Shown: positions 12,585-54,873 of the stretch, piece after piece
Layout of the letters: each line of letters begins with the position of its first letter
How positions within the stretch are numbered: the stretch's first letter is position 1
Source: Pocillopora damicornis
Taxonomy: Eukaryota
Assembly (NCBI RefSeq): GCF_003704095.1
Contig: NW_020843862.1
Coordinates: 1 to 64,000 of the forward strand
Length of the DNA stretch: 64,000 nt
Direction of reading: 5' to 3'
Program-made: the position numbers and the translations under genes
Notes under the pieces: model-generated
Seen by the model: the letters and a program-made list of their open reading frames with translations, nothing else
What the model was told of the DNA's origin: nothing
The model's database searches: none

Positions 12585-15500
12585 TCACGACGAGTTCGCA
12601 GTTCTCCGACTGTTATGCAACCTCCTTGCTCTCATCATTCCTTGATATGTCGACATAAATTTATTTCCATATCCGTAAAATTTGGAAGAGCTCCAGTCTC
12701 GACAGTGTTGAGCTGACAGTCTAACTTCTTCATAATTCTTTGGTGTCCGTCTTGTGTATTGAGGTAGAATTTCACTAGCTTCAGCTGATAGCGCCTGTAA
12801 AACAAAAAGTAACACACCGTTAACCCAAACATTTTGATGCAGCTGAGACACAAATACTTGGAAAGTTTGCGTTCAGTCTGAGCCAATAGTCATGAATGCG
12901 TATGAAGCACGAGAAACGCGAGCCAGCGAGGGGTCTGGCACTGATATTGAGACCAGACCCCCAACAAACCTCTCCCCGACTCGTCTCAAATCTTCCCGCA
13001 GGCGAAGAATCGCGCGCCCTTCAGCGCTAATTGAGGGGGCTTGCTCACAGGCTAGGACAATCACTCTGTATTGTAGACTGTTACTTATAGAGTTCAAAAA
13101 AATTCCTGTTTTTCAGGCAAAATTTCACGATGTGAGTTGTTGCTACAAAACAAAGACGACCAAAGTCTTACCTTTAACCAGATCACTGCATCTGTACCAA
13201 AACCTTCCATGGAATAAAGCTGCATATCTCCATCAAAATATCTGGCATAGAGTCTTGATAATGGCAGCCCGTATCCATAGCCGGCCTGGAACGATATAAA
13301 AAACATATCAACAACGGATCTGAGCTGGCTTATCAAGACCCTTATTATTAATTTTCTATAATCTCATTAGCCGTCAATTTGATGCCGTTCCAAAATTGTT
13401 ACGAGGATTCAACTGCCGATCATTTCCAAGAGTAAACATACTTCACCCTATAACCCCCTGGTGATTAAAATATGGTTTTTAAAGTTTTTTCCTCTTAGCC
13501 GACATTTTAAATGAAACTTACGTTTCGGCTGTTTACGACGGTTGTTTATCATTGATAAACACACTTTGAAAGTAATCTTTCATTCCAAAAACAGTGCCCA
13601 AGATTTCGAAGTTCCATTTACTTATTATTCCGTAATCTACTGGTACCTCAAATAGGCGCTTATTTGAGGAAATGCGGTTTTTCAATAACTTCATATCTTG
13701 AAGCGTACATGGTTGTAATTGAAATTTCACATTGTTGGAAATTGTGTGTTTTCTTACCATAGGTGCAGCAGAACCAGCTTTCAGTGGCTCTGGTGCCGAT
13801 GTATAATGATACTCAAACACTTGATCAATTGTACTCTTTGGGATTCCACCTCCTTGATCAGAAATCTAAACAGGCAAAGGGAAAAGAACTCTAAACTTAA
13901 TGACAACAACATTAGGGCATTCTACATAATTGAACTCAAGCATTAAAAAAAGAGTCAAAGTTCGGAAAGCAATGATTAAATCATAATACAGCTTTCATTA
14001 AAAAAAAATAGTTGGACAATCCTATTGCAAGGAATGTCTAGAATTAGTCTTCATCAAAGGTTACTTTCAAATCATGCACATGTATATTCATGAAATAATT
14101 GTACCCGGTGAGAACTGTGTTGATAAAATAAATTGGCTACCATAGAGATTTTTTAAAGCTGATGTTTTGAGAATTAACACTCTCAGTCAGCTCAGACAAA
14201 GGGCCAACTCTCAAAATGTCAACTTAGCCCTTTACTCCCTAACATCAGTAATCATATTCTCCCTACTGTTCTCTGTACATTTACTAAGGTGCTGACAAGG
14301 AGAACTTGTTTAACAATCAAGAGTTTCTTTAGCTGGTGATCATTTCCTTTATTCTCATAACATTAATGTGTGATTCAGTGGTGATATTGTAAAGAGAAAT
14401 TGGATGCTGGTCACTCTTAGGGGTTAGAGGGTAAAGAAACCCCTCACAGCCTAAATTTAAATTATCAATTCAGTTGATAAAACCAAAAAAAGAGAACAAA
14501 AAGTTTGACTGTCAATGTAGGAGCCTTTGAAGAGTTCTCTTTTCTGAAGAGTTTATTACATGACAAGCATGTTTAATGAAGCTAGGCAACATCTAATTAA
14601 TGGCACACAGAAAAAGGAAGTGCTTCAACTTTGTGTGTAATATAAACATCCTTATCTTTCACTAGGAATAAATCAAACAAATCCAAAGTTCGGGAATTGT
14701 AAGTGAGTCTAGGAAACTACATGTAATGCTGAAGGCTGGCAAAATAGGCTGCTGAAACAGAGTTAAATTGATGCTACCTTGATTGTCATGTCATGTCTTC
14801 CTTTGGTTATCATGATCTTTATAGGAGGAACATCAGTACTACTTCCATGTTGTTCCACAACTGCACGCATGGCATTCTTAAATACAGAGCAGTATTGAAT
14901 ATCAGTTTTTTAAGCAATGATTTCTCATTTTTATTGCCATAGGCAGCCCACTTGTTAAAGCACAAAGTTGTATTGCAAACTTGATTAGCTAAGTTCACAC
15001 ACTGAAAAATGAAAAGCATATTTCAAAACCATTTAATGCCACTTTCCCTAATGATCCAGCTCCTTTAATGCAGCCCTACTGGAATATAACCTGGTAAAGG
15101 CTGACAGTTAAAACAAGTATTCTTTGCAAAAAGAATGAGACCTATTTTTGAAATGGTGGTGGATTATTCAACCCAGTGAAACTTTGTCACATTTTAAACA
15201 GTGTGCCAAGAACATACCTTTAATAATTCAAAGAGCATGTGATACAAGTGTCCAGGAACATAGGCCATTTGAATGGGTTTCTTAAGATCAACACCTAAAT
15301 GGAAAAAATAAAACACTGATTTACTTCTTCAACTTGAAAGTCATTACAAGAACAAAAGTAATTGTTACAACAAGGAATTCTGCTATTCTGAAAAAATGTA
15401 CATTTTTTAGAGACAACAAAGCGTTCATGGGGAGTCACAAACTGTATGAAATTAAAAAATAGATTCCATATTGCTATTTGTTGGTTTATTAATAAATCAC

Positions 15501-30463: not shown

Positions 30464-30563
30464 NNNNNNNNNNNNNNNNNNNNNNNNNNNNNNNNNNNNN
30501 NNNNNNNNNNNNNNNNNNNNNNNNNNNNNNNNNNNNNNNNNNNNNNNNNNNNNNNNNNNNNNN
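30464..30563. other. Assembly gap (100 N), probably hiding the WDSUB1 terminal exon
   Basis: Run of N downstream of the last visible U-box exon. Confidence 1.
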
Positions 30564-33479: not shown

Positions 33480-36400
33480 TCAGAGCGACGTTACTGTTCT
33501 ATACTGTCCATTGATCTCTTGTGATTTCTGGCCATTGAGTCTTTGACTGCTGTCTCTTCGTTTTGGAGGATCTGGTTTTGTTGGATGACCACTGTTCGTG
33601 TGCACTCCACTGGTGTTCTTTGGCTCATCTTGCTTAGGAGGCTCTATCACCCAATGGATAACATTTTTAGCATCCTTCTTTCGCTTTGCCTCCTCATCAG
33701 TCGCCATCAATCTACTCAGAAGTCGCTCCTCTGCGATCTTTAATCGTTCGTTTTGATTCTCGTCATATGACAATCTCTTTGTCATTCCTTTGTACGGCGG
33801 GCTTCGCGGATTGCCAACGGTCAAATGGTCGGAATCGCCGGAACTTTCCGAGCATGAATCGGAAAAAGGCAGCGAAGTGTCCGATGATTTATCGGAACCG
33901 GCCCGATGTCTGTCAAAATCTGAGCGGTGGAAATTGGTTGGCAAAGTGTAAAAATGCCTTTCCCTAAATTCGCCTTCGGAAGTTTTTATTGCGGCAATGT
34001 CGGACTGTGATCGTGGCCTTATTTCGGCAATCTCTGGTTTTCGTAACGTGTCGCTTCGATACGAATCACGTTTCTGGTATTCGGGTCTTTTCGGGACATC
34101 CGTGGCTGAGCGCCGTCTGGGTAGGTCTGGAACTGTTAGTCTGGAAAGAGTGGATGTGACGTCATCAGTAGAGGACCTTATTGATGACGGAGGAGAATCA
34201 TCACTTTTTAATGACGAGACTGTGGATTAAACAAACGTAAACATCAAAATTATTTTCTTCGTTAAAAACTAAATTCACGCAATAACATTAGAAGTACTGT
34301 ACAGAATTTTCCTATCTCCTAGACACTGTTTTAGCACTGAAACCCGTGAGAGTGACCAGAATCTCATTTCTGATTACAATATCGACACTGCGTCAAACAT
34401 TAAGGTCATGAGATTAAATGGTACGACCACCAACTAAAGAACTTCTTGATTGATAAACACATTTTCCTTTTCGGTACAGAAGGAATTGAACTGAGAACAG
34501 AGTGGAATATATGCATACCGATGCTGGGGTGTAAAGGGGTAAGACCTACAAAAGGAATGGGACCAATCATGAAAACATGAAAAAACATTATCACGGCCAC
34601 TGACATTGAAGACACTGAATAATAGGAAAAGTTTGCTATGATTCATTCCGCGATGTGATTGCTTTCTTTGACTTTTTTAATCATTCCCTGACACAAGAGA
34701 CATTTTGTTCATGAAAATGAACTATCGCAGCATGGCAGAGTAAATTTCATTTTCCGTGAGGAATTTTGTGTCTAATGAAAGTGCGTTTCGTTCAGTAACG
34801 GAAGCAGGAAAACACGACGAAAGAATGAGATTGAAGAGCGGTGAAATGCGCTTCCTATTTACTCTTTACCACACAGGTCATGTGTGACAGTGTATCCGTA
34901 AACAAACTATGGTAAGCATTGTCTTAACACCTGCTCAATGGACAAAACTTTCAAGAATATTATTTCAATTGTTCCATAAACACGCGGTTACAAGCACAAC
35001 GAAAACCAAAACACTCTCATGACACTCTTATGAGGAGACATCTCTACTTGATCAAATCTCTGCGTTCTAAAAATTCCACTAAAGTTCTCTGTCTCTCCTA
35101 CATTCCCGAAGAATCTTGAAGTTACCATGGACACCTTTTAAACCCCCCCATAAGAGCCCATCAACGGTAGCATAAACCCTGGCAATTGAGCAGAAACTTA
35201 TCTATATCTACAGCTGTCATTTGACCCCCTACTGAACGGCCGACAATTCGATTCCAGTTAGATAGCGGTTTATCGTTCTCGCGATAATTTTATTATCATA
35301 ACATCAGAAATGTGTGTTTTAGCTATCAAGCAATATCTTGTGAAAATATTCCTCGAACAAAAATATGCATAGCTCTTGTTCTGTTATCTTCAAAACATAA
35401 TATGGGAGCCAGAAATCAATACTATCGTCAACGATCGATCACCTAACATCGACATAGAGGTCACGAAACTTACTTGTACTTCGTCCCAATGGACTCGAAG
35501 CTCTTTCAACGCTTTTCCAAAACTGGTCTGAGAGATTTTCCAGTGATTTATGATAATTCTGCACGGTCCTGTTCCTCTGCTTGAAATCTTTGACGTCTGT
35601 ATTTTCTGTTGGCGTAATAAAAGTGATATTAAGCTTTTGTAAACACGTCATGAATGAAACGGTTCGTGAATATTGTTTGGAGCAGTTGGTAAAAGTTATA
35701 TTTATAAATTTTGCACGTCTCGCAATAAATTGCGTTTGCTGCTCAGGAACAGTCTTTTGAAACATGAAAAACTAAGTCCCAAACAGAAGTTGTAACCGTA
35801 TACATTCGCTTTGAAGTTGATACAGTAACCGGCTATCAGAATAGATCATTGAAATTCGTACTTCTTGATTTAAACTTTATTACTCTACATATGAATAATC
35901 CGAGCCAGCAAAGTAATCCATTGGAAACAAGACACGTTAGCTCTCTACTGAGTCAAACTGACGTATCTTTACAATCTGACTTGAAGAACTGTGTCCTTGA
36001 AAAGAAAAAAAAACACAGCGCATACTGAGGCTTCGAACGTGATGGAATATAAACTATGCGAGAAGGAAATATAAAAACACGATATTCGGAGTTGAAGGCT
36101 CTTGTTAGGAAGATTTTAGTAGTTGATTTCTCGGAATACTGAGTGAGATCCAAAGTGTTTTGCTTTTTTTTTTAAACGATCTAAGCAGTCACGCTACTTG
36201 TGTAAGTCGCAGAGTTTCACTCACAAATATTCAGTCCCCGGAAAGAGATCGAATCAGAGTACACGAAAACGGATTAAGACTGTTGAATGAAACAGGATTT
36301 ATGGTGTTATCTCCATTGGGACTCAGTCAAGTCTTCTTATTTCGTTTAAAACCATAAAACCGTCAGCTTTCGATCTCCACGAGACCACAAGATCACTAGG

Positions 36401-39400
36401 AAGTAGTTTTAAACAATAAGATAAAAGGCGAGGTTTCTTTGTGGTACTGATAAGATCCACTGTCTTAAAATTCCGTCAGGCAATCCATGTAAATTCAATC
36501 GCTAAAGAATGGAGTTAGTAGCGGAATAGTTTAATAGCGCGTATTACTGAACCGAAAGAAGATCAATCAGTTGACTGACAAAACTCACCCGTAGCGTGAG
36601 GGTCATATCTGTATAGAGACCTGAAGTAGTTATCTGTAGTAAAGAAAACACAACAACATTAATGCTTTCAATATATAGCACAACATTACAATACATAGAG
36701 GTAGTAATTTCGTGTGTAAAATCACTTCACAAACTCAGCAAAGAATAACCTTGAATAACTCTAGCTCTGACAACGGAAGGCTTCGCAACAAACGTGTTAC
36801 CCTTCTCGGGAAACTTCGGTTTGACTCTCTTAAACTTCAACATAATTCAACCTTAGTTGCTTCTATCACCATCATTTAACGTTAACAATGTCTGTTTGTC
36901 GCTTTTGAACCGCTGCAACACTACTACAAACACATCAGGTTTCCTTTCGCCATTTTAGTATATCACCATAAACGATTCCACAACCAGTTTCCGTTCGCTC
37001 GTACGTGGTGACAAACTGTTTCGCGGATTGTCTCACAGCCAGAGAACAACTTGATCGCAATACTGCAACAATGAGATGCAATTGACTAGTGAACCGAAGC
37101 AATCTTCCTAATCCAGCGCGCGATTTCAGAATTTTGCATAGAAGTGTAAAGACGTGATATCAATCGACCGTGGGCGTGTACGATAAGTAATTTGTTGCCC
37201 TAGGAAGTCACATAAACTGTCGGTGTGCGAATTTGATTTATCCACTGCCGTTCTTTGGTAGTTAAAATACACCCGACATTCCGTAATACAGATGTAACAA
37301 TAAGTCGCCTCGTCATAGCCAACACCAATATTAATGGGCTTTTGACTACGCTAAACAAATTACATCTAATTATGCCTAATTATGCGGTTTGCTCCTTTTA
37401 AAGCAATCAAAAGGCACGGTTCGTTTACATTCCTGAGGCTAAGGACGGAAGTTTTTTAGGTTATTAGCACGGGGTCTTAAAATGTCAAACTGATAAATGT
37501 TTTTGTTGTTCTTTGCTTCTATTTCTTGTAAGGGAGTTTGTTTTTGAATTTCTACACAGCTTCTTGGCTTGTTAAACCGTGGGAATAACTGAAGCCACAA
37601 ACAGCGCATTGTTTATTCAACAGTAGGATGCTGTTTGAGTTCGTCCTTCAACTCGTCAGTCACGAGAGGCCCCCTCAAAAGCTAAGGGATAGCGGTAGAC
37701 AGGGAGGGAGTTCTGAACTTGGACAAACTTCTTCCCACAGAAGAAACGCCTTTCCGTTTCGATACCGAGACAGGAATGGCTTAACTGGTGCGTTTGCTAA
37801 AACAACTAGGCTAAAACCTTTTTTTATCATACAAACAATAGATCCTGTTGTTTTTTTCGTTTCCTTATTGTTCTGGCGCTTTCTTTCTTTGCGGTTTCGG
37901 GTTTGCCGCCTTTTCATTGACGACCGTATGCAGAACAAAAATAGCAAAAAGCAATTTCCTGCCATAAATAATATCGATAGGCTTCAATTTCTCGGAATAA
38001 TGCCTAAAAATAAACCAATACCCCCTAAACTTTTGTGTTAACAGTAAAAGGATATAGTTTGTTGAACTTTGATATAAAGCTTTGGCGAAAAAATTAGGCA
38101 CACGCTCTTAAAATTGAATGAATCAACGCAATCAAAAATGCCGCTTTTTTTTTAGCAAGGAGCGAATTGTCGTGAATTTGAAGGATTAAATTAAGCCCGA
38201 AGAAAATCGGATTTAGCCATCAAGTTTAACTGGTAAAATATTGTAGATTCAGTAAAGTTACACACAAAATTTTTATCCGCTTGCGTCAACATATATTACG
38301 TAAGTTTGGTATCAAAACTCGTTTTACCTGTTCTGAAGCCACGAGCAGGCAAGGTGGCCGCGCGTTCCTTGTGTATCTCACTGAGGTCTGGGTGTGAGAG
38401 CGAACTCTGATCCTTGCTGAGGTTCCCGGATGAGAGAGTGTTGCTTGACACGCTTAAGGATTCCTCAGAACCAGAGCTACCAGCGTGGAATGAACTGGCA
38501 CGTGACTTGGGGTCTTGTGGAAGCTCTACATTAAAATGGAGGAGTTTGAGTTCTAGTAAAGTTACAATTAGTAATTCATATGAGCGGAATAGTTATTTTT
38601 TTTTATAAAATTTCCGCTTGTCTCTTTTTTTCTTAATTTGCATGAACCATGTCCGTGGATCAACAAGTCAAGAGCTCTTGAAGGCTACTTACATTTGTTA
38701 CTTGTGACAAAAATTAATTAGAGTACAGCTCACGATCATTGCTAAATTACAATAGAGAATTTCTGGCAACGAAGCCACAAAAAGCAAAATTTCAGAACTG
38801 TTAAACCATGTGCGCATGCAACTATGAACATACAGCGTGTGCTTAATTAGAAATTTAACGTTCAAAGTTCAGAATCTGTTCTCTACGAAATCTTGTCGTG
38901 GGCGTCTTTAGTGGACCATAGATTATAGGCTTGAGCGGTTTTTTCTGCAAGGCATCTTTAACTGCACGAAAACCGTTTCATTTGCTAAAAAATCGTTTTC
39001 AATTCTTCCGATCCCTAGAACTAGATGTCGACTCTCCCGTCTCTCTGTTCAATGTTTCTTGTAGTTTTAGCTCTGGAAAGCCGCTGTTTAATCAGACAAT
39101 TTCCGTGGTTTACATTCTTCTTTATTTGTGTCAACTGTCTGCCTTACAATGTACTAATATTGAAGGGAAGACATTTCTTTTCAGTCACCCTTGGGAGTGA
39201 CGAGTATGATATATATTATGTTTACTGAGTTAAAAAAATCGTTTGGAGAAATATGCTTGCGTTGTAGCACGCTTCTAAAATTGCCCTCTCTTGAGTAACT
39301 AGTGACCCGCTGTGAATTTCCTCGAACCATGACACGAACGTGCTGCAACTTCTGCATTTAACAAAAACTCTGTTGGTGAAAAAACTACAAACTATTTAAC

Positions 39401-41335
39401 GAAATCGCCTCCTCCATGTGGACAAGCTTTGGACACTTACAGACACGCCGCAGTTTTTGGAATTTTACTTGCTCTTCATACAGAATAAGAAGGAACTGGA
39501 AGATCTTTCCATTTATTGTTTCTAGGCTTAAATTTGAATTTATGTTAAGATTTGACAGCTAATAATTAAACAAGTTACGGAATTGTCATCGCAACTATTT
39601 CGGAATTATTTTGATCTGCCACTAAATTTACAAACGGAACAATGTTAAGGAAGTCATACAACTGTCTCCAAGGTAACGGAGGTGCATGTTTTGATAAGAG
39701 AAGATTATGCCATGGGTAATTAGCTCTGAAAACTCTCAAGACTGGATACTCATTTTCGCTATAACATCCGGAAACCTCAACAAACAACATGGATTACACG
39801 AAATTGACATTTACTGAGCTCGATAATTCTACTTGCACAGTCATAAGCTACTTGGTGTTTTGTTACGCTATGAAAATATGACGAATATTAATTATTAATA
39901 CTAATTAAATAGCAAAGGCCGATGAGCGAGATCATTCACTTGTTTTCGTCGTCTGCGTTAGCAGACGTTTTAAAATCCTTTTAAGGAATCAACTAGAAGT
40001 CGTCCACCGGCCGTTTCGTTTCATATTCTTGGTTTGAAAAGCCTTTTCGAATAATCTCCTACTGTATTATGAAACTCTCGTTTCAAGACTCGCGTCTGTA
40101 GGTACAAAGTCACTCATCGCGTGCCGGAGATTTGGCTGTTAGTCAATTGAAACAGCGATTCATGAATCCAACCACGTCTTTCGTGGTGATCACAGTCTGC
40201 CGCTGAACCGAACACTTCTGAAAGAGGAAGTTAAACTGTCTACTATGGCCAGTTTGCGAGCTATACTTCTCCAACTGATTGTTCCAAATTTGTTTTTGTG
40301 GTTTAAAGTTTACGCAAAACAATTAAATGACTCGTGGGGCATAAAGTTTTCAACGGGGAATGTCACGTAATGTTTTGAAGCCACAGACACTTTTTCTTCC
40401 TTGGCGAGCTCGCTTTAGTTCTGTAAGACAGCTTATCGTGCAATACAAGGTTCCAGTCGTCATTAAAAGTTTTAAAAATTTTCCATAACACACCTAAACA
40501 ATATCGGACTGTAAACTTCCAAATCGAGAATGCAAAATATGCCACTTGTTCTTTTCAGTACTCAACTTTCTCCTAACAAAGCGCTTTTTGACTCTAGTAG
40601 TTTCAATGCGTTATCACAGAGCCTAACGTTTATATACTGCTTTGCACACACAACGACAAGAACTCTTTCTAATTTATTGGTAGGACGAATAACAACTCAG
40701 TAATAAATATGTAATAAAACGGCTGATTAACCAAGACTTATACAACTGTTGTTGCAAAGCTGTGTTGTATTGAAATCGACTATGACAGCGACACTCTACA
40801 GTTCTCAGTCAGTTGAGCGCATAGTCTCGCTTGTTTCGTGTTTGGAATTTTTTAAGTTTGTAAACAAATTACTCAAAACAGTAAGCTTAAGCTAGAAATT
40901 CAGGGAGATTTTAGCGAAATTTTTGGCCAAGGAATAACTGGATGTCTATGGCTCTAGATTAATTGTCCAAACTTCTGTTCCGCTCTTCTGTTACAACCTT
41001 CTGTAAAACTTAGGCCCAAGATAAGCTTAGTAACTTTGTAACTGTGCGTAACAACTGAGTATTCCCACTGATGGAAGTCTCTCCTTGCGAAGGCTGACTC
41101 ATTGAAACTGTGCTCGTATTTTAGAATCAACAGCCGGTAACTTAAACGTATTTACAACCGAGTACTTACTTTGACACAAAGGGCACGGTTTATCCACAAA
41201 AAGACACGAGTAACATCGCGGATGACCACAAGTGTCGATCAGTCGCCTCTTGTGCGCACTGTCGTATCTCTCTCCGCAGTCAGGACAAGTGATAAACTTG
41301 GGTGAAGACCACTGATTATCCATAACTGTAGGCAT
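33480..41335 (-). CDS. RING-finger protein with TANC/rolling-pebbles-like N-terminal C3HC4 RING, disordered Ser/Arg-rich body and C-terminal PDZ-binding motif (about 426 aa)
   Basis: Exons: 41335-41170 (MPTVMDNQWSSPKFITCPDCGERYDSAHKRRLIDTCGHPRCYSCLFVDKPCPLCQ); 38525-38328 (alternative in-frame acceptor at 38552); 36633-36589 (DNYFRSLYRYDPHAT); 35605-35474 (ENTDVKDFKQRNRTVQNYHKSLENLSDQFWKSVERASSPLGRST); 34219-33480 (ends YRTVTSL*). All introns are phase 1 GT-AG and the frame is open over 1281 nt. Further small exons cannot be excluded. Confidence 0.82.
34330..34542 (+). mobile_element. piggyBac-type MITE (family A), last intron of the RING gene
   Basis: gagtgaccag...acattaaggtcatgaga...caccaactaaagaacttcttgattg...atatgcataccgatgctggggtgtaaaggggtaa. 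Confidence 0.72.
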
Positions 41336-42028
41336 TGGTTCTCTAGAACGTCGCGAGTGCACTTCAATCTTTGCTGTTTACTGAAACACAAGCAAGCCAG
41401 CGTAAATAAACAAAGCTAAAAGCTAATGGAACTTGAGAAAGCCGCAAATTGTTAACGCGTCTGGCGCGCACACTGAAGAGATGTGAGAGTTTTTTCACCT
41501 CGATCTGTCTACTGAAGCTCTAAATCTTCGTGGTCTGTGAGTGAAGAATGTTACTGATGTCTGTTGCGTCTCGATCAAAAATGTCTTAGTCTGCACTAGC
41601 TTAGGTCCAATACAGATGTGACGGAAGCAAAAAGAAAAAAAAGAAAGCATAATATAATATGCTGGGTGACAAGTGGTTAAATATCCAGAGCTCGATAAAT
41701 TGATTGGAAAATGCCTTGATGACAATGGAACAAAAGAAGTGTCAAGAAACACATCGCGAAAAATTACGCTTCAAACTGTTCACACACAGCAAAGTGTCCA
41801 CGCGTGACAAGGCTTTGTAGAAAGCTTAATCTCGTAAAAATGAAAAGAATTAGAAATATAAAGTAGTGCTTTACTCCGGCGAAAGAGGCAAACATATGAA
41901 TTCTTATGAACTTTTGCAGAGACAATGGTTAAGACGCGCTAATAGCTCATGATTTTTATACGTTACGCAAGGGCAAAGACGTGGAATTTAGAGTTCAAGG
42001 GGTGAAAAAGTTGTCCACACGCACGCTT

Positions 42029-44972: not shown

Positions 44973-47900
44973 CAGGAATAGTGCATGAGTTTAGTCTCAG
45001 ACTATGCTGTTTGTGTTCAAGTGTTTTCATTTCCAAGCTTTGTTTACTCAAGTCCTTAATGATGTTGTTATCGTTAGATACTCATGGCCAGTCAAAACCA
45101 AACACAGTAATATAACAAACATATCTTAGTTAAAGTGTTAAACTCTTCCCGATCAGGTGGATCCTAAAGAATGATAAGCTTTTGATTCGTTAATGTTGGG
45201 GCCGAGTCTGGCTCAAAAACTTCGATTAAACTTCTCTTTTAGTCTTGTTAATCCCTCATTCCATTGTATGAAAAGTTTATTATTTTAAATAATAAAAATA
45301 GTGACAAAGATGGGGACAATGATGGGACTCAAACCAGTAAATATTGGCAAACAAAATTCAATATTTTACTGAAAGTGAAAGTAAATATTTATCAAACTTT
45401 TTATTTAAGAATCCTTCCAAGACTTAGTCGGTTCTTTCTCAGACGTTTTCTAGGCTTGTAATACGCGATTATGCAACGATAGTCTTGGATTCATAACTGA
45501 TTTACTCGCAACAGAGTGACTGACTCTATTCGTCTGATAACGGTAGGTCGCGTGCGCGTGAAAAAGTCTAATAATGCTAGGCTTTAAATCCTCTCAATGA
45601 AAACTAATAAACAGAGTTATTCATTTGACAAGTTTTCAATATGTGTTTCTTTGTTTTTTGCGGCGTTTACACCATCTGTTCATTGTCTTTCTTTTTATAA
45701 GAAATTAGAATATTATATGGAAGTTTTGAAGATGTGCTCACGGAAACATCGATTCAAGGAAAGCTGTTCTTCAGTTTTTCATGGGAAACACACAATCAAC
45801 GAAACCGGCAATGAAAAAAGACAAAAAAAGTTGCAGGATACCGCGCTCACAGACATCACTTAATGGTTTATTTATTCTTTTAAAATCTAAACCACAGCTT
45901 CGTATTGCAATTCTTGCACCACCCACTAAATATGATGTAAAAACTTGATTTTATTCCAAAAGTCCAGTTTAATTGTTTTGAATTCATTCGTAGAGGATAA
46001 AGTTCAACTGGACAGCGTCCAAAATTTTTGTCACAAATTTGGAATCGTCAGCAGTATTGTTTTCTTGGAGACTCGACTAAAATCGATCATAGCTGTTTCT
46101 GGCGTGGTAAATCGATAGTTTTCGATCATTGAAGGATGCGCTTCAATTAAGGTATTATCAAAGACCGATACTTAAACAACCTGAACGGCCTTGTGATTTC
46201 GGAGTAGAGTATCTAGAGACGTCATTTGTAAAAGTGACTGACGAACAGAGTGGGACTTTTCGTGGACGTACGTAAAGTCAGACAACCGAATATTGATTTG
46301 AAAGGACCGCACTAACAATATTTCAACGTCGTCAGCAACCGGAGTAAAGAATTACATATATCTGATATGACAAACAGGTTGATGGCATCTGATCAAATTC
46401 AGTCCTCAGTCATTTGAAGGTGCGAGATACTCGCGATGTCTCGTAAGAACACTTTCTTTTACGAACAATACATTAGGAATACATGTTTCCTTTTTTCTTC
46501 ATTAGAAACAAATCAAGTCACAAAACCAGAGAACCGGATGTCTTTGTTGAAATCAAAATGACTCATCAAATTGAGACGATGGCGTGAGTGAATTGTAGCG
46601 TGTTAACAGCAAGTCAAGTGGATAACGATAGAACAGACGGGTTATGAAACGGAAAACTGTTGGATATCCGCCAATAAAATTTAATATCTTAGCAAGTAGT
46701 GACTCCATAACCTCGTCTTTACGGAACTGAGAAATTAATTTTCAGCAGGTCTCAAAGCTTAAAATCAGTGCATTATGCCAATTCCGTGAACAAAGTGGTG
46801 TTCAGAGAAACGGAAAACGCGGTTAGACATTTGTAACAAAATTCCAATTTTAGCAAGTGACTCAATCAAAGCACGGCATCAGGAAATAAAGCATTTACGT
46901 TCTAGTTACTGGAAAAGCTTAAGATTTATGAATTATCAGTTTAAAAGAACGAAGCTACTTACTTTTTACGTTGATGAGATTGGCAAGATGGGCTCACTTT
47001 AACAGAGGGCACATTAAATCGATGTTCGTGTGATTTCCATTACCATTTAGCTGAATATTAAAAATATCATTCGTTCACTTGCAAAACTTGTCACACAACG
47101 TTATGTCAGTTAGGGGCAGTCGCCCTGATAGAAGAGAAAATAGCTTGAAATAGGGGTTCTTTTGAGAATGAGCAGTGACGTAAATTATGCTTACAAAAGC
47201 AAGTTAAATTTGTAAAGTAATGTCAGCTTTTGAAATGTATATTTGGAATCTCGTGACCACACACGAACAGGCGAACGGCGAGGACATAGTTTCCATGCGT
47301 AATTTGCTTTTATTTGTTTCGTTTTAGGTTTTTTTTTTCTTCAGTCTTACGATTATTCATCTGTAAATTCAAAGGTCAAGATCATTAAAGAATATACATA
47401 GAGGACATTTGTCACTCAAGAAAGTATGTTTTACAGCAGTTATTGTTGAAAGGAAATCACATTCGGAAAAGCACTACAGAAAACCAACCACCCACTGCAA
47501 TAATAAAATGAAATCAAATAATGTACTTGTACACACATAGAGGACTCGGTATACATTTACGAAACACTACTCATTATGTATTCAACTCTTCTCGTTTACG
47601 CTGAACAAATTTGATCTTAATGCTGTAACATAACAAGCCGATTTTACACATCAGTTCCCCCTACCTTTTAAATGATTCTCCGCTTTGCGAGATCTTTTGT
47701 TTCTTTGTGGAAAGATCCTACAAAATTCTGCTATACAGCCACAGTTTCAGAAGCAGCGTTAATGTGGTAACGCTTTGGCGCGAAATACCGTCTTGTAGTT
47801 ACTATGACTTGACACCGCTTTTTATTGCAGCAGGCGGTTTCATAATATTTGACGTCATTTATTTCTTGCCGAGATATTTTCGGTTTGTTATTTTTTGTTC

Positions 47901-54385: not shown

Positions 54386-54873
54386 TCAGTCAGTCAGTTA
54401 GTCCGTCAATAAGTCAGTCAGTCAGTCAGTCATTCAGTCAGTCAGTCAGTCAGTCAGTTAGTCAGTCAGTCAGTCAGTCGGTCGGTCAGTCAGTCAGTCA
54501 TTCGGTCAGTTAGTCAGTCAGTCAGTCGGTCGGCCAGTCAGTCAGTCAGTTAGTCCGTCAATCAGTCAGTCAGTCATTCAGTCATTCAGTCAGTTAGTCA
54601 GTCAGTCGGTCAGTCGGTCAGTCAGTCAGTCAGTCATTCGGTCAGTCAGTCAGTCAGTCAGTCGGTCGGCCAGTCAGTCAGCCAGTCAGTCAGTCAGTCA
54701 GTTGGTCAGTCGGTCAGTTGGTCAGTCCGTCAGTCAGTCGGTCAGTCGGTCAGTCAGTCGGTCAGTTGGTCAGTGAGTCAGCCAGTCAGCCAGTTAGTCA
54801 GTTGGTCAGTCCGTCAATCAGTTAGTCAGTCAGTGAATCAGTGAATCAGTGAATCAGTGAATCAGTGAATCAG
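54386..54873. repeat. Long imperfect (CAGT)n microsatellite ending in (CAGTGAAT)n
   Basis: Directly visible. Confidence 0.98.

Follow-up and report, generated by a model that had tools for sequence, protein, structure and literature searches.

A short RING gene beside WDSUB1 in corals and other anthozoans, probably the counterpart of the TANC locus without its STAND NTPase-ankyrin-TPR core

Introduction

The proteins TANC1, TANC2 and Rolling pebbles (Rols) act as scaffolds at the postsynapse and in the fusion of myoblasts; TANC2 is also a disease gene of neurodevelopment. We have analysed a stretch of 64,000 nucleotides (nt) from the coral Pocillopora damicornis (positions 1 to 64,000 of contig NW_020843862.1; hereafter the window), which contains a five-exon gene on the minus strand and, convergent with it, WDSUB1. 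The protein of the five-exon gene opens with a RING of the subtype found in TANC and Rols, and closes with a putative PDZ ligand. An initial annotation of the locus had called it 'mini-TANC'. The gene, which is anthozoan-wide and encodes a mostly disordered protein of about 426 amino acids (aa), probably corresponds in Anthozoa to the TANC locus, minus the core of STAND NTPase, ankyrin repeats and tetratricopeptide repeats (TPRs); its product would serve as a PDZ-tethered RING adaptor.

The gene and its transcripts

Five coding exons run from 41335 to 33480 on the minus strand, with GT..AG at every border and phase 1 at every junction. Their sum is 1281 nt, or 426 codons and a TGA stop. The RING exon (41170..41380, minus strand) starts with 45 nt of 5' untranslated region (UTR), which opens with an in-frame TAA; the ATG at 41335 follows, then codons 1-55 and one further base, the coding part being 166 nt (41335..41170). 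The C3HC4 RING of the TANC/Rols subtype occupies residues 17-54 (41174..41287), that is, the extreme N-terminus, where it had been placed before. Coding exon 2 (38525..38328, 198 nt) encodes a serine-rich disordered part ending in ..LPARGFRT, coding exon 3 (36633..36589, 45 nt) the conserved motif (D)NYFRSLYRYDPHAT, and coding exon 4 (35605..35474, 132 nt) a conserved NYHKSLENLSDQFWKSVE helix motif. Coding exon 5 (34219..33480, 740 nt including the TGA; 245 aa and the stop) contains RPRSQS, PFSDSCSESSGDSD, YDENQNERLKIAEERL and NVIHWVIEPP, and its last four codons (33483..33494) spell VTSL, a class I PDZ-ligand pattern. All these features lie on the minus strand.

The exon structure is carried by RNA. 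Public runs covering the stretch number 22, of which 14 are RNA, and contigs from four RNA runs (four studies) were mapped onto 35450-41449. These contigs carry the joints 41170|38525, 38328|36633 and 36589|35605. The joint of exons 4 and 5 appears as a loose contig end at 35474 that reads the letters of 34190-34219. On the 3' side of the RING exon, exon 2 is the sole joint partner in the four runs. The exons were searched one by one, and for whole-protein work we used two natural full-length orthologues, P0012 (Porites) and P0224 (a close relative), which also confirm the split codons at the junctions. The five phase-1 exons and the length of about 426 aa given in the initial annotation are thus borne out by the borders, the RNA joints and colinearity with both orthologues. 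The gene is genuine and expressed.

The RING exon had been taken as the first exon, which it is not. Its 5' edge lies at 41380, after an AG at 41382-81. Upstream of it, three alternative 5' exons, all of them non-coding, are joined to it from about 41.5, 47.0 and 47.7 kb, and through them the gene reaches at least 6 kb past the interval 33480-41335 first assigned to it. Only the 3' ends of these three exons are seen (all minus strand): 41499..41530 in run X1, and 46963..46992 and 47665..47694 in runs X4, X11 and X15. Because the in-frame TAA (41380-41378) opens the RING exon, the start is fixed at the ATG at 41335 and the upstream exons cannot lengthen the protein; an N-terminal extension by way of them is ruled out. 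A minor RNA form retains part of intron 2 (36750..38327, minus strand; joint 36750|36633) at about one tenth to one third of the exon contig depth in the four runs. Its frame would stop after exon 2, and it may yield a protein of about 131 aa with the RING and the serine-rich part and no PDZ tail, or may be a target of decay.

Orthologues across Anthozoa

With exon 5 as query, 21 relatives were found. The Porites protein P0012 (419 aa) comes from a 1920-nt transcript contig with UTRs and is colinear with all five exons, as is the transcript-derived P0224 (430 aa), which has 89-98% identity per exon. The named family members in a profile search, which relies on shared words and is length-bounded so that absence outside Anthozoa is limited to that search, are solely anthozoan and belong to eight genera (Porites, Montipora, Acropora, Actinostola, Actinia, Nematostella, Xenia and Dendronephthya). 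The same small protein is present in RefSeq and in other gene models of these genera, where it is labelled 'uncharacterized' or 'RING-type domain-containing'. A literature search found nothing for the accession numbers of the orthologues, nothing on TANC together with Nematostella, and nothing that links the family to TANC or WDSUB1. The sequences are already public but unnamed. A divergent version of the RING first exon (MSLKIEVPKFLKCPECEEKY..) exists in octocorals beside the usual one; it is seen in P0183 versus P0032 (Xenia) and also in P0228 and P0034, and gives either an alternative isoform or a paralogue of the small protein.

The RING and its relation to TANC

The RING reads CPDC-x15-CGHPRCYSC-x6-CPLC within the first 55 residues. 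It has the fixed spacing C-x2-C-x15-C-x-H-x2-C-x2-C-x6-C-x2-C and the signature KR[RK]L[IV]DxCGHxRC[YF]xC[ML]F. A phmmer search with the 55-aa RING exon against 1.84 billion representatives returned 260 matches at E<=0.001. The exact spacing is found in 141 of the 150 best matches, and the RING motif, in its strict or loose form, in 145 of them. The long named matches are all TANC2 or TANC2-like proteins, from Ischnura (damselfly), Homalodisca (leafhopper), Aedes (mosquito) and Branchiostoma (amphioxus), and a search seeded with the amphioxus sequence added a protein of Babylonia (gastropod). Each of these long named RING-bearing proteins contains HTH_TANC1, AAA_lid_TANC1 and ankyrin repeats, with TPRs in all but that of Homalodisca (three of the four scanned with Pfam). 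Every named full-length bilaterian member of the RING subfamily that was examined (insects, amphioxus, gastropod) is a TANC protein. The hemipteran TANC2 contains KRKLIDTCGHERCYSC, the string quoted in the initial annotation. The amphioxus TANC2-like protein opens with its RING (residues 16-53), like the coral protein. Coral and TANC RINGs are 50-60% identical, and a profile-profile comparison of the small family with TANC (hhalign) gives E 1.8e-19 over 41 RING columns. The assignment to the TANC/Rols subtype, proposed in the initial annotation, is upheld by these matches, the best of which do not belong to an unrelated RING family.

The relation holds in the reverse direction. When the amphioxus and hemipteran TANC RINGs were searched against the coral genome (234 Mb, 4393 contigs), they matched this exon only (E ~5e-12), the next match being at >=0.01; no separate RING-bearing TANC came to light by this route. 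The RING exon itself is without a close copy in that genome, its next match being a Roquin RING (E 0.004). On these searches, the coral RING is the reciprocal-best, one-to-one counterpart of the TANC RING.

Other searches with the RING were less informative. Pfam gave a sub-threshold zf-RING_5 in the RING exon (21.5 bits, cut-off 27.9) and no match in the other exons. A PDB sequence search returned weak generic RING matches only, and an ESM Atlas search with the Porites orthologue returned generic RINGs only, at scores <=0.80. No shared intron after the RING could be shown; the amphioxus genomic open reading frame continues unbroken past the RING. The name 'mini-TANC' implies more likeness than there is: only 41 RING columns align with TANC, and the class I pattern of the tail is a generic one. 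The clusters of short RING fragments come mostly from marine contigs. In the hemichordate Ptychodera flava (P0026, P0028, P0145), TANC-type RINGs occur as tandem copies in proteins that also have C2H2 zinc fingers and a region resembling FYVE, a lineage-specific reuse.

Absence of the TANC core

The core of TANC proteins is absent from the coral gene. A tblastn search with four TANC proteins over the 64-kb window found the RING only, and no NTPase, ankyrin or TPR exon. The STAND P-loop NTPase with TANC-type AAA lid and winged helix (PF25520, PF25521) had no Pfam match in any exon, and neither an ankyrin block nor the three TPR repeats that follow it in TANC were detected by Pfam in the exons or by tblastn in the window. 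The RNA joints leave no space for further coding exons, and the orthologues agree. The introns thus contain no core exons, as had been noted at the outset, and no splicing of the RING exon to NTPase, ankyrin or TPR exons was seen in the four RNA runs. The gap at 30464 was considered as a place where TANC exons could be concealed and was rejected, as it lies beyond the stop codon, within WDSUB1 territory.

These results bear on the proposal that only a short isoform, or a wrongly modelled piece, of some larger TANC gene is seen here, with its core beyond the contig start or in a gap. The window does begin at the contig start and has three 100-N gaps, and unannotated upstream exons do exist. Exon 5, however, closes with a stop codon, and it is there that the transcripts of related species also finish, complete with UTRs; the space downstream is occupied by WDSUB1 on the opposite strand. 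The TAA at 41380 bars extension of the frame by upstream exons, exon 2 is the only 3' partner of the RING exon, and eight genera give the same small protein. The STAND-ankyrin gene sits 175 kb inside another contig. We consider a truncated or mis-assembled TANC very improbable.

TANC-like core genes do occur elsewhere in the coral genome, where a search with PF25521 (HTH_TANC1) found 14 places. The best core locus, C1689:174188-179948, encodes an NTPase, AAA_lid_TANC1, HTH_TANC1 and about 16 ankyrin repeats, with no RING and no TPR, and its tail SMETKI is of the class I PDZ type. In the Atlas, ANKRD50 clusters rank first for this gene (0.99), with TANC2 behind. No WDSUB1-like sequence was found near it. 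Two more loci encode single-exon NTPase-HTH-ankyrin proteins of about 1670 aa without TPR or RING. As the C1689 gene is ANKRD50-like and RING-less, the coral STAND-ankyrin genes inspected are not RING-bearing TANCs. Besides the C1689 gene, at least 13 HTH_TANC1 STAND genes were noted on contigs C824, C3883, C1698, C3384, C2883 and C4004; in several of them one uninterrupted frame of about 1600-1700 aa spans the NTPase, HTH and ankyrin regions. Some HTH_TANC1 STAND genes stand in nearby opposite-strand pairs, an expansion of ANKRD50/TANC-like NTPases in the coral.

The WDSUB1 neighbourhood

The convergent neighbour of the RING gene is WDSUB1 (23906..~30233, plus strand), just downstream as first reported. 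Its WD40 and SAM exons are present, as is the U-box up to its middle. None of the open frames further downstream contains the remaining half (DGYSYER.. in Nematostella), which may lie in the 100-N gap at 30464-30563. The arrangement recurs in other anthozoans. In Nematostella, the convergent neighbour is 9.6 kb away and ends in a U-box C-terminus, which was read directly. In the octocoral Dendronephthya, it is 1.4 kb away and is WDSUB1 by all three domains. Human TANC1 (159,533,391-159,797,416) immediately adjoins WDSUB1 (159,800,549-159,851,482), the two being 3.1 kb apart (PMC2680219, Table II). The human pair, too, is presumably tail-to-tail. A tblastx comparison of the Nematostella and Porites flanks with the WDSUB1 region of the window gave no match, and wider synteny of the 2q24 type (BAZ2B, PKP4, MARCH7) was not seen among the open reading frames of the window, which were inspected by eye only.

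Disordered region and PDZ-type tail

The protein is predicted to be mostly intrinsically disordered, with short helices. In the AlphaFold2 model of the whole protein, the predicted local distance difference test (pLDDT) score is 39.6, and mostly below 50. Within this region, four elements are invariant across hexacorals and octocorals: FRxDxYxRxLYxYxP, SLExLxxxF..V, an RxRxxS site, and the Pro of a P-x3-V stretch (NVIHWV here).

The coral protein ends in TVTSL-stop, the class I PDZ-ligand end already recognized in the initial annotation. Tails in the small family include TVTSL, STAL, VSTL, VNTL and MTDV, and the candidate pattern x-[ST]-x-[LV] is kept in seven of the eight anthozoan genera. 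RING-bearing TANCs end in ETNL, ETAL, ETSL or ITDL. The PDZ motif of TANC binds PSD-95, SAP97 and SCRIB (PMC5533708).

Possible function

The eight cross-brace C3HC4 zinc ligands are invariant, as a RING fold requires. The AlphaFold2 model of the RING has a pLDDT of 74.9, and its nearest structures in Foldseek are the RINGs of TRIM32, RNF4 and Roquin (template modelling score ~0.55), with no match at E<=0.001. A Pro follows the seventh ligand. The position two after the first Cys is D, E or N in the small family, and S, T or G in 122 of 133 TANC-type RINGs. Six residues separate zinc ligands 6 and 7. Active RINGs usually carry I, L or V two after the first Cys, and an E2-binding helix between ligands 6 and 7. 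The hydrophobic contact residue and the ligand 6-7 helix of an E2-binding surface thus appear to be lacking. In view of the D/E/N contact position and the six-residue loop, a RING that binds proteins or depends on a partner seems likelier than a canonical E3 ligase acting alone.

An E3 ligase was one of the two functions offered in the initial annotation, and the rival reading is a canonical stand-alone RING E3, anchored by its PDZ ligand and marking scaffold-bound substrates for degradation. In its favour are the eight zinc ligands, the modelled RING fold close to TRIM32, RNF4 and Roquin, and the Pro after the seventh ligand, as in active RINGs. Set against these are the acidic or amide residue (S, T or G in the TANC type) in place of I, L or V, and a spacing of ligands 6 and 7 that leaves little room for an E2-binding helix. 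Pfam RING models score under their cut-offs, and no E3 activity is reported for Rols or TANC in the literature examined. Canonical E3 activity is somewhat doubtful, and we regard an E3 of this kind as the less likely reading, though a serious rival.

We favour instead an adaptor that would be tethered by its PDZ ligand and would use its RING to bind a partner. The C-terminal tail, judged from its pattern, would dock it on PDZ scaffolds. Partners would be recruited by the RING and by the four conserved linear motifs of the disordered region, one of these motifs, RxRxxS, being a putative site for basophilic kinases. The RING of invertebrate TANC has no known function, and a free-standing RING with a PDZ-ligand tail offers a simple system for finding its role.

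Origin of the gene

Three observations together point to a counterpart of the TANC locus: the reciprocal-best RING, the presence of the neighbour of TANC1, and the failure of the searches to turn up, elsewhere in the genome, a TANC with a RING or with TPRs. They suggest orthology of the locus to TANC, and make a core-less TANC counterpart with an adaptor role the reading that we favour, with moderate confidence.

Several points weigh against it. When the family was compared by BLASTP and hhalign with the part that precedes the NTPase in nine TANCs with a RING, nothing aligned beyond the 41 RING columns. The three-residue motif of the tail is weak evidence for common descent, as the class I pattern is generic. 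The tail of the Nematostella protein is ANTS, at a genuine genomic stop, so that the PDZ motif would be dispensable there. Within 10 kb downstream of the Porites lutea gene, a P450 gene stands in place of WDSUB1. Among bilaterians, adjacency of TANC and WDSUB1 comes from human only. No canonical or RING-bearing TANC was found in the four of 14 HTH_TANC1 loci inspected, so that a diverged or unassembled TANC may exist. Rols7 without its RING rescued myoblast fusion in Drosophila (PMC2171639). The RING was dispensable in that assay.

Some of these points would fit an independent RING paralogue, produced by ancient duplication or shuffling of a TANC-type RING exon and lying next to WDSUB1 by chance. 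Homology is confined to the RING, synteny with WDSUB1 is not kept in Porites lutea, and the Ptychodera genes (tandem RINGs with C2H2 or FYVE) indicate that copies of this RING can come to stand in other settings. The coral RING is, however, the sole one of TANC type in the genome and a reciprocal best match, and no canonical TANC was found that could have been the source of a copy, again in the four of 14 loci inspected. By our own estimate, the odds that one and the same gene would adjoin by chance in human and in three orders of Anthozoa are of the order of 1 in 10^3-10^4. We therefore consider an independent paralogue improbable and retain the reading of a TANC-locus counterpart.

How the coral gene came to differ from TANC is a separate question. 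Two histories were considered, a pre-fusion state and a secondary loss of the core. In the first, a small gene with RING, disordered region and PDZ ligand stood beside WDSUB1 in the cnidarian-bilaterian ancestor, and an ANKRD50-like STAND NTPase-ankyrin part and TPRs were inserted into it in the bilaterian stem to give TANC. If so, the RING of TANC, its genomic address and perhaps its PDZ tail derive from this gene. As all exons are in phase 1, exons can drop out in frame, and loss of the core would be mechanically easy. The published TANC phylogeny contains bilaterian orthologues only (PMC5533708). This bilaterian-only record, together with the lack of a TANC-like remnant, leans against gutting. 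We lean slightly towards genes that were separate ancestrally and fused in the bilaterian stem over a core lost in anthozoans, and put forward the full pre-fusion scenario only tentatively. The locus provides a dated, synteny-anchored case of a large multidomain scaffold gaining or losing its core.

Other features of the window

Two further features of the window were noted. On the minus strand at 13097-13865, open frames resemble the ATP-binding domain of mitochondrial kinases of the PDK/BCKDK type (..SDQGGGIP..). At 54462-54841, overlapping open frames consist of repeats of the SVSQSV type; these are tandem low-complexity sequence and not obviously coding.

Comparison with known systems

Roquin (RC3H1/2) has the next closest RING both in the coral genome (E 0.004) and in the PDB (E 0.025). 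Both proteins share the N-terminal QW..F..CP.C context and a short loop ahead of the last ligand pair. The similarity is generic, with 37% identity, and the coral gene is without ROQ or CCCH domains by Pfam. The Roquin orthologue of the coral is a separate gene on contig C4335 (793-1653 of locus L002), and it is this gene that carries the next most similar RING of the genome.

Human ANKRD50 is described as having a PDZ-binding motif (PMC6754446). The C1689 gene of the coral resembles it, with ANKRD50 clusters as its best matches and a PDZ-type tail, ETKI, comparable to the motif of human ANKRD50. It differs from the RING gene in being a separate gene, on another contig, with no RING.

The closest comparison is with TANC and Rols. 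The coral protein is without the STAND NTPase, AAA lid, winged helix, ankyrin repeats and TPRs of these scaffolds, and has 426 aa as against 1400-2600 aa in TANC; its disordered region carries motifs of its own, conserved across Anthozoa. A further difference is that no RING is described for vertebrate TANCs. With TANC and Rols it shares the spacing and signature of the RING, the placing of this RING at the very N-terminus (compare the amphioxus TANC2-like protein), a C-terminus of the class I PDZ type, and adjacency to WDSUB1 as in human TANC1.

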